64,000 nt of DNA from Mustelus asterias. Lineage: Eukaryota. The stretch lies in assembly GCF_964213995.1 (NCBI RefSeq), contig NW_027590144.1:1054001-1118000 (forward strand), in the 5' to 3' direction. Below, piece by piece: positions 5,077 through 51,596 of this stretch. The notes beneath the pieces are model-generated. The model worked only from the letters and a program-made list of their open reading frames with translations. It made no database searches and was not told the DNA's origin. The stretch's first letter is position 1. Every line of letters begins with the position of its first letter. Made by a program: the position numbers and the translations under genes.

Positions 5077-5577
5077 GGAATCTTCTGTTTTCAGTTATTT
5101 CCAAAGAGACGATGTCGTTTAAAGTATAAAAGCAAATTACTACGGATGCTGGAATTGAAACCAAAAGAGAAAATGTTGGAAAATCTCAGCAGGCCTGGCA
5201 ATATCTGAGGAGAGAAAATAGCTGACATTTCGAATGTTTTGACAAAGGGTCATCTGGAATCGAAAAGTCAGTTATTCTCTCTACTTACAGATGCTGCCAG
5301 ACTTGCTGAGGTTTTCCAGCATTTTCTCTTTCCGTTGTTTGAAGTGTCTTTGGTTGGGTAAATTGATTCTGAATCCCTGGGGCGGAGGAATTGTAGGTTG
5401 ACCCAAGACTATCGTACTGAAGAAGACACTGTAAACACTGTTCAGGGACCTGTCGGACCCAGACCATCCAGTCACTGCCAACATTGAATGCGTTGGCTTT
5501 GCAGGTCAGTCTCAAAGAGTTTCAGGGGCGCCCAGTTTCTGCCTCTCGCTGACTCAACGCAACCTCCGATTCGACAC
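5077..5577 (-). pseudogene. IGHV: Immunoglobulin heavy-chain V (IgM-type VH) pseudogene
   Basis: Minus-strand translation VESEVALSQREAETGRP*NSLRLTCKANAFNVGSDWMVWVRQVPEQCLQCLLQYDSLGSTYNSSAPGIQNQFT/TKDTSNN, resuming after the 5126-5333 insertion as IVSLEI/LKTEDS; Cys23 (5501-5503) and Trp41 (5459-5461) present; stop at 5522-5524; frameshifts; acceptor AG mutated to AA; YYC and RSS missing. Confidence 0.9.
5126..5333. mobile_element. Palindromic (foldback) Penelope-like short insertion with ~12-bp TSD
   Basis: gagaaaatgttggaaaatctcagcagg... vs ...cttgctgaggttttccagcattttctc inverted arms; TSD gtcgtttaaagt (5114-5125) / gttgtttgaagt (5334-5345). Confidence 0.7.
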
Positions 5578-5619
5578 TTGTAAAAATATCTAAAATCCTA
5601 TGAAAATAAAACGCCACGC

Positions 5620-5885
5620 ACTTCGGACATACTCTCTCACCTTTTCCCATCGGGAACAAGGTACAAAAGTCTGAGGACATGTATAAACCGACTCAAAAAC
5701 AATTTATTTCCTGCTGCTATCAGACGTTTGAATGGACCTCCGCCGCATTAAGTTCATCTTTCTCTACACCCCAGCTATGACTGCAAAATTTACATTATTC
5801 ACTCTCTCCCTTCCTTCCCTATATACGTTATGCTCTGACTGTATAGTGCGCAAGAAACAATAATTTACACTGTGTACTAATTAAG
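5620..5885 (+). mobile_element. Rex1/Babar-like LINE 3' end
   Basis: tacaaaagtctgaggacat..ccgactcaaaaac..ttcctgctgctatcagac..gcgcaagaaacaata; the same tail occurs reversed at ~58375-58725. Confidence 0.6.
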
Positions 5886-5953
5886 TGTCTTTATTTCTGC
5901 ACCTCTTCACAAGGGAATGGACATAAACAGATGACATTACCTTATCAGGGTAA

Positions 5954-5974
5954 AGACGTCAGTCTGATTTGCAA
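5954..5974 (-). promoter_or_regulatory. CRE-like and octamer-like motifs upstream of the VH pseudogene (putative promoter relic)
   Basis: TGACGTCT (minus strand, 5954-5961) and ATTTGCAA (5967-5974) about 380 bp upstream of the V exon. Confidence 0.3.
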
Positions 5975-6114
5975 TAATTCTGTGTCTCTAACACATTACA
6001 GCGAAATATAATTCATTGGAAGAATTATTATCGAATTATGTAACTTAATGCTGGGATGATTGTGTTTCAGGTGTGGATAGCTATCACTGTAATTTGGGAC
6101 TGGATATAAGAAGA

Positions 6115-6450
6115 AGAGAAGCAGTGGCCTCGTGTTATTATCGCTAGACAATTAATCCACAAACTCAACTAATGTTCTCAGGACCCGGCTTCGAATCCCG
6201 CCACGGCAGATGATGGAATTTAAATTCAGTAAAAACATCTGGAATTAAGAATCTACTTATGACCATGATATCATTGTCGATTGTGTAAAAACCTATCTTG
6301 TTCATTAATGTCCTTGAGAGCAGGAAATATGCCGTCCTTACCTCATCTAACCTACATGTGATTGCAGAGCCACAGCAATGTATTTAGCTCTCAACTGCCC
6401 TCGACAATGGGTGGGCAATAAATGCTGATCAGCCAGCGGCACCCATGTCC
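6115..6450 (+). mobile_element. tRNA-derived SINE with CR1-type tail
   Basis: Box A/B-like head (gcagtggcc..ggcttcgaatccc); tail gggcaataaatgctg..cccatgtcc shared with the old LINE family. Confidence 0.65.
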
Positions 6451-48831: not shown

Positions 48832-48904
48832 TGCTTCTGCTCGATTTCGAACGTGGGCCCTTGCGTGCGTGAAGCAAATGCAACCAGCACTACACCACGG
48901 AAAC
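48832..48904 (-). pseudogene. tRNA-Val(CAC) pseudogene
   Basis: GTTTCCGTGGTGTAGTG..TTCGAAATCGAGCAGAAGCA; heavily mutated. Confidence 0.75.
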
Positions 48905-50111
48905 TGTTAGCTGCTCTGTAGCCCAATGGGGCTGTCTTGAAATGTTCCAAAATTCATTGGGAATGCTGGAGACACATTAATCTAAGAATGATTGAAAATG
49001 GTTGACAATGGCACAGAACGAGGAGAGGCCCATCAATCCATCAGATCTTTGCGAATTATTTTATGAGGAGCTAAACAATTGAAATGACGTTGCGGGATTG
49101 GTGGGTCGATGGGCCTGTTCCTGTCCTGAGCTGGTCTTTGTTCCGATTTCAATTTCCTCCTCTAATTCCATGAAGTTGATGTTTCTCCCTTTGAAGTCAT
49201 TGCAAAATCCCCATTTGAAGAAGGAGTTTCTGCGGAATCCATGTACAATTTGCGTAAACAACCTTTCCCTTACCCAATGGCAGTAAGTATTGGATTTAGC
49301 TTCCCGATATAGTTTTCAATATAAACATATATTTATTTATGCAATTGATTTCATATCGATTTTAGAAAACGAATTTAAATCTGATGAGGCATCTCCTCAT
49401 TATTTCTGAATTATATCTAAAATAACTACATTTACTCCACAACCTTCCACAGAGTGTGGAATATAACCGACGAGAATGAATCACCTGCACCTGAAGCAGT
49501 CTTCTTGTGTGGTCCTCCTGTGTCCTGAACATCCGATCCGAGAACCTCGAGAATCGATGGAGAATCTGTCTTATTCTCACGGACTTCACATAGGGCAATA
49601 CAGTGGCACGGCGGTTAGCACTGCTGTTTCACAACACTCGGGACCCAGGTTCAATTGAAATTCCTCCTTAGTGTACACGAACAGGCGGCGGAATGTGGCG
49701 ACGAGAGGATTTTCACAGTAAGTTGAATTATTAATTGCAGTATTAATGTAAGCCTGGTTGTGACACTAGTAAATATGTTTTGGACACGGACACATCCAGA
49801 ATATGTTTGGCGTTAAAAATAAATGCATCCATTATTGCTTAGTCTGCAAAAGGGTCCACGTCGATTTGTCAATCAATGATCAGCATTGATGAGAAATAGA
49901 TTTCTGGCTGCTCCTGTTGTTAAAATGTCGTGTTCCATCGCAATGAATATCTAACACGATATTGCCGCAGTTACACCACACCAGGGAATTCCAGTTCAGG
50001 AAGTTTACTCTGGAGCTCGCACGCTTTTTACGTTGCCAATGAGTTCATTTCTCTTTTGTGTGTCAATGGCTGTGCTCATCTGCTTGGTTATCTTTCTTAG
50101 TGATTGTCCGT

Positions 50112-50328
50112 GTGTCTCGTGGAACAAGCTGCCAGAGGGAGTAGTAGAGGCCGTTACAAGTTTATCTTTTAAAAAGCATTTTGACAGTTACATGGGTACG
50201 ATGGATATAGAGGGATATGGGCCAAATGCGGGCAATTCGGATTAGCTTAGGGGTTTATAAAAAAGGGCGGCATGGACAATTTGGGCCGAAGGGCCTGTTT
50301 CCATTTGTAAACCTCTATGAATCTATGT
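50112..50328 (+). mobile_element. CR1 3' tail
   Basis: WNKLPEGVVEA..GYGPNAG; same subfamily as 10703-11275. Confidence 0.85.
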
Positions 50329-51080
50329 TTGAATCGATCGGTTTGGGAATCTATCACTTAGTTTACTGGTCTCTGTGTTGATTCTGTGCAGTATCCGAGG
50401 CTTCCAGTGAAACGGAGGTGGAGGTATTCATGCATTATCATCGTTAGCAACGCAAACTAGTAGGTGTCAGAAGTCTGCAGAATAATTCTGGGTTTATAAC
50501 GAGGGACGTTAGAATTGATGTCACTGTCTGGACATATATCTATATGGTTATATATCCTTATTCGTGTTGGTCTTTCCACGGGGCCGTGTGTGTATCTGTT
50601 CTCCGCATGTCTGCTGGGTTTCCTCGGATGCTGTGGTTTCCTCCCACAGTCCAAAGATGTGCGGATTAGGTGGATTGGTCATGATAAATTGACCCCTCGT
50701 GTCAGGGAGATTATGTGTGCGGTTACGGGAATAGGGCCTCGGTGGAATTGTGGTCGGTACAGAGTCGCTGGGCCGAATGGCCTCCTTCTGTTCTGTAGGG
50801 GTTCTATGATTCTATGATCTCCATAAGTGTCAGTCTTTGTAGGTTGCCGTGTGTGTACCTGTTTCCAATATGCGGCTCTGCTGTCCACGGGAGGGCGCTC
50901 TCTGATCACTTATGAAAGATCACGATCCCCTTCTGGAGGAAGCGACTGTTTGAAGATGTAAAGATGGGCGGAGAGATGGAGTCACCTTCGATCTCATAAC
51001 ATCCCCCTTACTGTTTCAACTACTCCAATTGCAGATTTGATGCAGACAGTGATCAGTCTCTCTGTTTCAGAACTCGAACC

Positions 51081-51557
51081 ATGGGGGTGAAACTCTGTCT
51101 CACTCTGGTTATTGTCCTGATTACAGGTCTGTCATTTTGAACGTCTGCGTGAAATCTGCCAGTCACCACATTCATTCCCCATTTCCATCTCGAGGGGATT
51201 ATTCCGTTGTTGTTACTCCTTCTAACCCACTGCGTGTCTGTTCCCTATTTTCAGACATGAGTAACGGTGACTCAGTGTCCCAGTCAGGACCAGGAGTTGA
51301 AGCAGCAGAGGGTGAAGAATCAGCAATACCCGGCAGTTACTCGGGACAGAGTTTAACTGTACAACATTACCTGTTCTGGTATCGCCAGTATACACACCGA
51401 GCTCCTCGTTAACTGCTCAGAGCCGCTAATGTACCGAAACGGCTCCAGGCTTTTTACACTGCAGCGGGAATCTCAACCTGAAACAAAGCACTTTTCACTT
51501 GCCCATGAAAGATTTGAAGGTGACAGACAGCGCCGTGTATTACTGTGCACTGAGAGC
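51081..51557 (+). pseudogene. T-cell receptor alpha/delta-type V pseudogene (leader exon 51081-51126; V exon 51255-51557)
   Basis: Leader MGVKLCLTLVIVLIT with phase-1 GT; acceptor ttttcag; DSVSQ..YLFWYRQY..AP..DLKVTDSAVYYCALRA; Cys23>Gly (51332-51334), stop 51410-51412, frameshift. Confidence 0.92.
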
Positions 51558-51596
51558 CACAGTACATGAAGCTTCATACAAAATCTGGCACAGGTC
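51558..51596 (+). promoter_or_regulatory. Recombination signal sequence of the V pseudogene
   Basis: Heptamer CACAGTA 51558-51564; 23-bp spacer; degenerate nonamer GCACAGGTC 51588-51596. Confidence 0.7.

Follow-up and report, generated by a model that had tools for sequence, protein, structure and literature searches.

The 64-kb stretch of DNA analysed here (the window) contains two dead antigen-receptor V segments, a VH-type relic on the minus strand and a relic on the plus strand whose type is probably TCR alpha/delta. A truncated second VH unit and several tRNA features are also found in the window. The features are listed in Table 1.

Table 1. V relics, duplicated VH block and tRNA features, with positions in the window
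Feature	Position	Strand	Evidence or details
Duplicated ~5 kb block, copy 1 (V 3' end and downstream flank)	8..5099	.	Self-blastn
Conserved core, ~205 bp	3378..3582	-	92% identity between block copies, against 56-76% in the flanks
Decayed signal, VH copy 1	5001..5039	-	Heptamer CACTATG, 23 bp, 9-mer CTGAAATTG
VH-type V exon relic	5040..5576	-	Translation, PDB phmmer, Pfam, atlas
Dispersed-repeat (SINE-like) insertion, ~208 bp	5126..5333	-	Splits FR3 of the VH relic
Putative leader intron, VH relic	5577..5640	-	GT...TTTTTACAAG
Leader-like exon, VH relic	5641..5680	-	ATG, 40 nt to AAG/GTGAGA donor; tentative, read from sequence
Second VH unit	21341..21433	-	Local alignment
Leader exon, TCR-type V relic	51081..51126	+	MGVKLCLTLVIVLITG, split codon; ATG 51081, donor 51126/51127
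Leader intron, TCR-type V relic	51127..51254	+	GT...TATTTTCAG; acceptor 51254/51255
TCR alpha/delta-type V exon relic	51255..51557	+	Translation, atlas, library matches, profile
Signal, TCR-type V	51558..51586	+	Heptamer CACAGTA at V end, 13-bp spacer, ACAAAATCT
tRNA-like gene, 90 nt, exceeding standard tRNA length	52157..52246	+	ARAGORN alone
tRNA-Gln(CTG), sound	55308..55379	+	Rfam RF00005, 60 bits; ARAGORN
Decayed tRNA-Gln copy, 7-nt deletion and substitutions	56229..56294 (approx.)	+	Duplication alignment

A VH-type relic and its duplicated flank

The V exon of the VH-type relic is a pseudogene without an open reading frame, carrying a stop codon, a frameshift, the repeat insertion and a decayed signal. 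Its minus-strand translation reads '...EVALSQREAETGRP*NSLRLTCKANAFNVGSDWMVWVRQVPEQCLQCLLQYDSLGSTYNSSAPGIQNQFT...' and, beyond the inserted repeat, '...NDIVSLEIT...'. The stop is a TGA at 5524..5522, and a 1-nt frameshift lies in FR3 ahead of 'KDTSNN'. The heavy-chain hallmarks 'LRLTCK', 'WMVWVRQVP' and 'KDTSNN' are kept, 'QCLQC' stands in place of 'GLEW', and the YYC region is disrupted. In phmmer, a 78-aa piece (5521..5288) had 2612 distinct PDB matches at E<=0.01, with single-domain E-values down to ~1e-8; the best 60 of these 2612 are without exception antibody constructs that include a heavy-chain V domain (60/60). The atlas lead, scoring 0.90, is 'Ig heavy chain V region', and the Pfam V-set match is weak (E 0.051). 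On its sequence, we firmly assign the minus-strand relic to the VH type. The sequence-only reading had placed an IgM-type VH relic at 5077-5577; the relic is real and of VH type, with IgM, as against IgW or TAILV, a candidate subgroup, and its extent is slightly wider, with the exon at 5576 to ~5040, the heptamer at 5039..5033 and leader-like sequence up to 5680. Splice sites are present around the leader-like exon, but this exon is tentative because its peptide is poorly hydrophobic and unconvincing as a leader.

An imperfect direct repeat of 12 nt, read by eye (5345..5334 and 5125..5114, 10/12), brackets the insertion in FR3 and duplicates the 'TSNN' codons. A stricter automatic search for target-site repeats around the insertion found nothing. 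Further copies of the inserted repeat lie at 43826-43924 and 45702-45793 in the within-window comparison. The heptamer of this VH copy (copy 1) matches the consensus at 5/7 positions, and the 9-mer at 23 bp, which is common to both VH copies, matches the nonamer consensus at 3/9.

We also found a second, truncated VH stub, which the earlier reading had overlooked and which sits in a ~5-kb duplication. In this copy 2, the V exon is reduced to its last ~54 nt (21433..21380); the upstream V body is missing, and no VH-like translation was found upstream of the stub. Its signal consists of a perfect heptamer CACAGTG (21379..21373, 7/7), 23 bp and the 9-mer of copy 1 at 21349..21341. Copy 2 of the block occupies 16485-21433, and its collinear pieces are 68-80% identical to copy 1 by self-blastn. 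Copy 1 of the block begins at the window edge and may continue past it. The conserved core ends at an octamer, ATGCAAAT (3389..3382 in copy 1, 20428..20421 in copy 2), which lies ~1.65 kb downstream of the VH signal in both copies. This 205-bp octamer block, 92% kept amid copies that are ~70% identical, is a detail of possible interest to specialists.

In a shark IgH minicluster, D1, D2 and J lie within ~1.3 kb of V, and the C exons follow downstream. The VH relics resemble a shark IgM minicluster (V-D-D-J-C-mu) in the VH-type V and the nearby octamer, and perhaps in the putative leader intron, the heptamer and the candidate 23-bp spacing, but inside the window neither copy is followed downstream by a D, J or C-mu relic. 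We found no signal pairs and no J motif, and the C-domain motif and Pfam C-set are absent from 166 minus-strand pieces (12 to 21479). It is unlikely that the VH units are remnants of IgM-type miniclusters whose D, J and C have decayed past detection or lie off the window edge. The octamer block does stand where the J-C intron of a minicluster would begin, going by minicluster dimensions, and the window covers only 5 kb downstream of copy 1. However, all 15.7 kb from copy 2 to copy 1 are in the window and hold no signal pairs, J motif or C-set match, whereas a V of equal age is still detectable.

A relic of probable TCR alpha/delta type

In the plus-strand relic (51081-51586), a good leader is followed by an intron and a V exon. 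Its first Cys is lost, with Gly (GGC, 51332-51334) in its place, and the exon carries a TAA stop at 51410-51412 and a frameshift between 51413 and ~51470. Both 'YLFWYRQY' and 'DSAVYYCALRA' are preserved. The first atlas cluster is 'TVA4' at 0.92. A representative library of 1.84 billion proteins yielded 15 matches at E<=1e-3, which are significant only by summing 2-5 V domains per protein, the single domains scoring 15-28 bits. Three of the 15 were checked against PDB. For P0003, the best per-domain match, and for P0008, 59/60 of the listed matches are TCR chains or constructs, and TCR alpha is matched in both cases; for P0002, two-domain scFvs dominate, and TCR constructs make up only 3/60 of those listed. 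On a profile of 21 TRAV-like domains, run over 2092 six-frame pieces, the two pieces of the relic score 45.8 and 22.3 bits, and the VH piece scores just 9.9 bits. The lower of the two scores (E 1e-5) belongs to the C-terminal piece, which was not used in choosing the library matches. The leader, intron, V exon, heptamer and TRAV-like profile scores bear out the earlier proposal of a real V relic at 51081-51596.

In direct PDB searches, lambda light chains and scFvs come first for the N-terminal piece (E 0.0045), and TCR alpha appears from rank 4, with 15 of the 60 matches listed. For the C-terminal piece, most matches are to heavy-chain constructs and come from the generic 'DSAVYYCA'. The assignment to the TCR type is thus not clean, since the N-terminal matches mix lambda with TCR alpha. 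The V domain is closest to TRAV/TRDV, with the direct PDB search ambiguous with lambda, and judged from its translation the plus-strand relic is probably of the TCR alpha/delta V type.

The signal of this relic is the sole site in the window that passes the signal scan, for which 30 shuffles gave a mean background of 0.67 sites per window. TCR V segments are expected to have a 23-bp spacer, and a 13-bp spacing is of the light-chain kappa type. Here, the only nonamer-like 9-mer (ACAAAATCT, 7/9 against the consensus) stands at 13 bp, and no nonamer is found at 22-24 bp past the heptamer, so that a 23-bp-spacer signal is lacking. The term 'V23RSS' is used in PMC12227049. A 10-bp deletion in the spacer of the dead gene could account for the spacing. 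Alternatively, the plus-strand relic might be a light-chain-type V, or a TCR/IgL intermediate, with a true 12-type signal. The place of the 9-mer and the lead of lambda light chains in the direct PDB search agree with this reading, which we nevertheless consider quite improbable: the atlas and the best library matches are of the TRAV type, 'YLFWYRQY' and 'CALR' are TRAV-like, and a spacer deletion would give an identical picture. Fainter still is the prospect that a TCR alpha/delta-like V has a genuine 12-type signal and belongs to a V class that stands between those of TCR alpha/delta and light chains. If this were true, the 12/23 rule would have let such a V join directly to 23-type segments, among them the VH-type V nearby or the 3' signal of a delta D, and the relic would be a leftover of the shuffling of V classes and signal types inside an ancestral antigen-receptor complex. 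That a TRAV-like V should have a 13-bp spacer is a detail that could reward specialist attention.

Layout of the window

The VH and TCR-type relics are divergent, their 5' ends facing each other ~45.4 kb apart; the coordinates confirm the orientation and the ~46 kb given by the sequence-only reading. The DNA between them is mostly LINE, and LINE EN/RT ORFs are present. The 64-kb window yielded no relic of D, J or C: there is no J motif and there are no signal pairs, and neither a C-domain motif nor a Pfam C-set match appears in 265 pieces on the relevant strands. TCR alpha/delta V segments belong to an array upstream of D/J/C delta and J/C alpha, of which the window contains nothing. The window shows no further V relics beyond those described, and there were no RNA runs containing the searched stretch. 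The tRNA 'cluster' once described around the TCR-type V is a generous term. One tRNA-Gln is sound; the rest are the ARAGORN-only gene, with no Rfam report at E<=1, and the decayed tRNA-Gln copy, which has no Rfam match at E<=1 and lies within a duplication whose two parts, 55274-55815 and 56196-56724, are 73% identical.

Origin of the relics and the antigen-receptor complex

A leader intron (putative in the VH relic) and a recombination signal (decayed in the VH relic) are still present in both V relics, which would therefore not be retrocopies. The best explanation, in which we place considerable confidence, is that they are two non-functional germline V segments that were copied as DNA and most likely descend from the elasmobranch antigen-receptor complex. 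The source would be a complex with interspersed IgH clusters, VH-like V and TCR alpha/delta V. The VH-type unit (V and ~5 kb of downstream flank) was duplicated long ago; copy 1 then acquired its stop, its frameshift and the inserted repeat, whereas the V body of copy 2 was lost. In the TCR alpha/delta-type segment, the first Cys disappeared and a stop and a frameshift arose, and LINE/SINE insertions may later have spread the relics apart. Neither relic can rearrange productively, and therefore both do nothing now. It is solely by their co-location that the relics suggest an origin in a linked complex.

The earlier reading took the window for the decayed boundary of a mixed IgH/TCRAD locus. 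The two V types hold, but they do not show a boundary, and the window has no D, J or C relic and a LINE-rich interval. The occurrence of two antigen-receptor V classes within 46 kb and the duplication of the VH unit agree with descent from a region of interspersed IgH-type and TCR alpha/delta V. As a tentative possibility, the window may still occupy the decayed border of one mixed locus, with an IgH-type V region on the left (minus strand) and a TCR alpha/delta V array on the right (plus strand). The two classes point outward, and the VH copies share one orientation and have no D-J-C separating them, a layout that looks more like an array than like a minicluster. Such mixing is shown by the published complex (PMC12227049). 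However, from the TCR-type V rightwards to the window end there is nothing Ig- or TCR-like, and only dead segments are present.

Alternatively, a piece of the antigen-receptor complex with both V types may have been copied or moved into a repeat-rich region and then decayed as a displaced orphon block, a reading that is plausible without being probable. Every segment is dead, the surroundings are rich in LINEs and SINEs, tRNA genes follow, and D, J and C are absent from the window. On the other hand, true loci also commonly hold dead V segments and repeats, and the old duplication (~70% identity) indicates long residence but not the place. Human IGHV, IGKV and TRBV orphons are a model for displaced V segments. 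Like mammalian V orphons, the relics are dead V segments that have a leader intron and a signal and are found in repeat-rich DNA at a distance from C genes, but the window combines two receptor classes in one block.

Deiss et al. reportedly described, in 2019, TAILV and VH segments inside TCR delta loci. The window likewise has a VH-like V without its own D-J-C and a TCR-type V as neighbour, but its VH relic is dead, whereas TAILV lies inside a TCR delta locus and, once joined to delta D/J, is spliced to C-delta. In elasmobranchs, the IgM, IgW and IgNAR clusters share linkage with TCR alpha/delta within the antigen-receptor complex (AgRC; Flajnik et al., Sci Adv 2025, PMC12227049). According to that paper, TCR alpha/delta-type V exons are interspersed among IgH clusters in four elasmobranchs, and this proximity of V exons explains VH-to-TCR-delta trans-rearrangement. 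The AgRC shares with the window the closeness of VH-type and TCR alpha/delta-type V exons, but the window has only dead V segments, without C, D or J.

The co-location is thus ordinary, because antibody genes lying next to T-cell-receptor genes have already been published for sharks and rays. The general idea that physical linkage underlies Ig-TCR chimeric rearrangement is likewise published (PMC12227049), and two dead V segments cannot themselves take part in such rearrangement. What is new is the duplicated VH unit with its second stub, the 13-bp nonamer spacing and the content of the tRNA 'cluster'. The relics by themselves matter little, being dead and illustrating a published principle. 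Their value is for annotation: they add two or three V pseudogenes, so far unannotated, as marks of old duplication and decay within or close to the antigen-receptor complex.

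Heavy-chain-type relic and its duplicate

The V segments in the window are dead. On the minus strand, the VH relic, a heavy-chain-type V pseudogene at about 5 kb, translates as (V)ESEVALSQREAETGRP, an internal stop and NSLRLTCKANAFNVGSDWMVWVRQVPEQCLQCLLQYDSLGSTYNSSAPGIQNQFT. Past a 1-nt frameshift, 'KDTSNN' is followed by a dispersed repeat of ~208 bp, then by 'NDIVSLEIT..' and a disrupted YYC region. Further copies of the inserted repeat lie at 43826-43924 and 45702-45793. By eye, an imperfect 12-nt direct repeat (10/12 identical) stands on both sides of the insert; it did not emerge from a stricter automated search. 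For a 78-aa piece of this relic (5521..5288), PDB gave 2612 distinct sequences at E<=0.01, and every one of the 60 matches listed is an antibody construct that includes a heavy-chain V domain. Its Pfam V-set match is weak (E 0.051, below the cut-off). We treat the atlas label 'Ig heavy chain V region' (0.90) as a lead only, and a word-based homologue search with the piece returned no match. We firmly assign the minus-strand relic to the VH class.

Self-comparison showed that 8-5099 has a second copy, 16485-21433, which aligns to it in collinear pieces with 68-80% identity. The second copy holds a truncated VH stub followed by a perfect heptamer (CACAGTG) and, after 23 bp, a 9-mer identical to that of the first copy. 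The V-exon end, heptamer and shared 9-mer indicate that two VH units, oriented alike, formerly lay 16.4 kb apart. A second full VH is ruled out, as what remains is the 54-nt stub. Within the duplication, a 205-bp core is 92% identical between the copies, whereas the surroundings reach 56-76%. The core terminates at the octamer ATGCAAAT; in each copy, the VH signal lies ~1.65 kb upstream. Its high identity could reflect selection or gene conversion, and the core may be a candidate regulatory element. A 'signal-joint-like' motif at 3478-3543 was read by eye and failed the signal scan, and is not counted as a signal.

Features of the V relics and the conserved core in the window
Feature	Position	Strand	Remarks
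VH relic, leader-like exon	5680..5641	minus	read from sequence
VH relic, intron	5640..5577	minus	short
VH relic, V exon	5576..about 5040	minus	
VH relic, signal	heptamer 5039..5033	minus	CACTATG, 23 bp, 9-mer CTGAAATTG; directly past V end
Second VH stub (copy 2)	21341-21433	minus	V exon reduced to last ~54 nt
205-bp core	3582..3378	minus	
205-bp core, counterpart in copy 2	about 20417-20622	minus	
TCR-type relic, leader exon	51081-51126	plus	convincing; MGVKLCLTLVIVLITG
TCR-type relic, intron	51127-51254	plus	
TCR-type relic, V exon	51255-51557	plus	DMSNGDSVSQSGPGVEAAEGEESAIPGSYSGQSLTVQHYLFWYRQYTHRAPR, stop; second frame ..NLNLKQSTFHLPMKDLKVTDSAVYYCALRA
TCR-type relic, signal	51558-51586	plus	CACAGTA, 13 bp, ACAAAATCT

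Structure and class of the TCR-type relic

The plus-strand TCR-type relic has lost its first Cys (now Gly), and its reading frame is interrupted by a TAA stop (51410-51412) and, downstream of the stop, by a frameshift. We scanned the whole window for signals (heptamer at least 6/7, nonamer at least 7/9, spacer of 11-13 or 22-24 bp). A single site was found, at the exact end of this V, and no other signal in the window passed; across 30 shuffles, the average was 0.67 sites per window. TCR V segments normally carry a 23-bp spacer, and the 13-bp spacer of the relic thus departs from a TCR-V signal. The plain explanation is a ~10-bp deletion in a dead gene; that the relic bears a genuine 12-type signal would be a bold alternative. 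The term 'V23RSS' is used in a passage of Flajnik et al. (PMC12227049).

We then investigated the V class of this relic, with the leader and the V-exon pieces, one from each frame, queried individually as unjoined exons. The N-terminal piece gave 214 PDB matches at E<=1, headed by lambda light chains and scFvs (E 0.0045), with TCR alpha chains making up 15 of the 60 matches listed. The C-terminal piece matched chiefly heavy-chain constructs through the generic 'DSAVYYCA', and direct PDB searches alone are not decisive for the class. The first-ranked atlas cluster was 'TVA4' at 0.92, and a word-based homologue search with the N-terminal piece found no match. A HMMER search of 1.84 billion representatives yielded 15 proteins with E<=1e-3, none of which passed 1e-10; their scores build up only by adding several V domains, each worth 15-28 bits. 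Because the names of all 15 are uninformative ('uncharacterized' or 'hypothetical'), classification was made through PDB instead. We read six of the sequences (P0001, P0002 and P0005-P0008) and checked three against PDB (P0002, P0003 and P0008). TCR alpha chains and TCR constructs account for 59 of the 60 matches listed for the rabbit protein P0008. The rattlesnake protein P0003, which has the best single domain (28.5 bits), likewise matched TCR chains in 59 of the 60 listed, nearly all of them alpha with a few V-delta. The gar protein P0002 is uninformative for the class, since two-domain scFvs swamp its matches (TCR constructs, 3/60 among those listed). The elephant shark protein P0001 (XP_007909367.1), a predicted protein, contains TRAV/TRDV-like and NAR-like V domains in series and is apparently a fused gene model spanning a NAR-TCR stretch of the TCR delta locus.

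A profile built from 21 V domains of the HMMER matches was scored against 2092 pieces. The N-terminal piece scored 45.8 bits, a circular result because this piece had selected the profile's proteins. The C-terminal piece, which played no role in that selection, scored 22.3 bits (E 1e-5 among the 2092 pieces), and the VH piece just 9.9 bits. On these comparisons, the plus-strand relic is probably of TCR alpha/delta type.

Other remains, repeats and tRNAs

Beyond the VH relic, its stub and the TCR-type relic, no additional V relic was found in the window, one 200-bp zone of which was omitted from the profile scan. No J-like motif with context was found in the window; 'FGPGS/FGPGT' (45555, 47257) was rejected as J segments, lying inside repeated elements without J context. 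Seven loose C-domain motif matches were likewise set aside (domain context in 0/7, Pfam confirmation in none on the strands tested). Across minus strand 12-21479 and plus strand 51609-63999, Pfam scans of the between-stop pieces with a length of 35 aa or more (265 in total) showed no Ig C-set match; the only notable matches were RVT_1, the weak V-set of the VH piece and a LINE-like ALKBH8_N, which we take to be LINE-derived. A search of sequencing runs found half the query words in none of the 20 listed, and none is recorded as RNA.

We checked ten long ORFs between and beyond the relics: six encode parts of LINE endonuclease/reverse transcriptase, one a zinc knuckle, and three had no match. 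LINE fragments whose ORFs encode endonuclease and reverse transcriptase occupy 8.1-10.3 kb, 23.6-29 kb and 35.5-37.8 kb, some as inverted pairs (8600-9785 vs 29146-27932). One repeat family occurs in inverted copies of 75-93% identity (38638-39303 vs 44903-47065), and within 42-49 kb the same few elements are nested together. A long minisatellite at 61299-62269 (73 offset copies, register ~28 and 84 nt, 86-95% self-identity) directly precedes a Tx1-type element that continues past the window end; ORFs inside it are repeat artefacts. The window has one sound tRNA-Gln(CTG) gene, one decayed duplicate of the tRNA-Gln region and one tRNA-like gene that ARAGORN alone called. The 93-nt ARAGORN 'tRNA-Stop(tta)' at 31719-31811, without Rfam support, is probably a chance call or a repeat of tRNA origin.

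Origin of the locus

Both V relics reported by the sequence-only reading are present, and their V classes hold, firmly for VH and probably for TCR alpha/delta; its account was slightly incomplete, as the stub in the second copy was unlisted. It had further taken the window as the decayed edge of a mixed IgH/TCR alpha-delta locus. Passages of Flajnik et al. (PMC12227049), on elasmobranchs, describe TCR alpha/delta-type V exons situated between IgH clusters and state that some V domains intermediate between TCR and Ig exist. In these passages, the proximity of IgH and TCR V segments accounts for VH-to-TCR-delta trans-rearrangement and TAILV, and earlier work on nurse shark and elephant shark is cited. 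Our literature search found no further paper altering this picture. We regard such a locus edge as a tentative interpretation, somewhat short of probable; equally likely is that the relics belong to an orphon piece of the antigen-receptor complex, copied or moved elsewhere and then decayed. Under either explanation, the principle of linkage between IgH and TCR V segments is already known.
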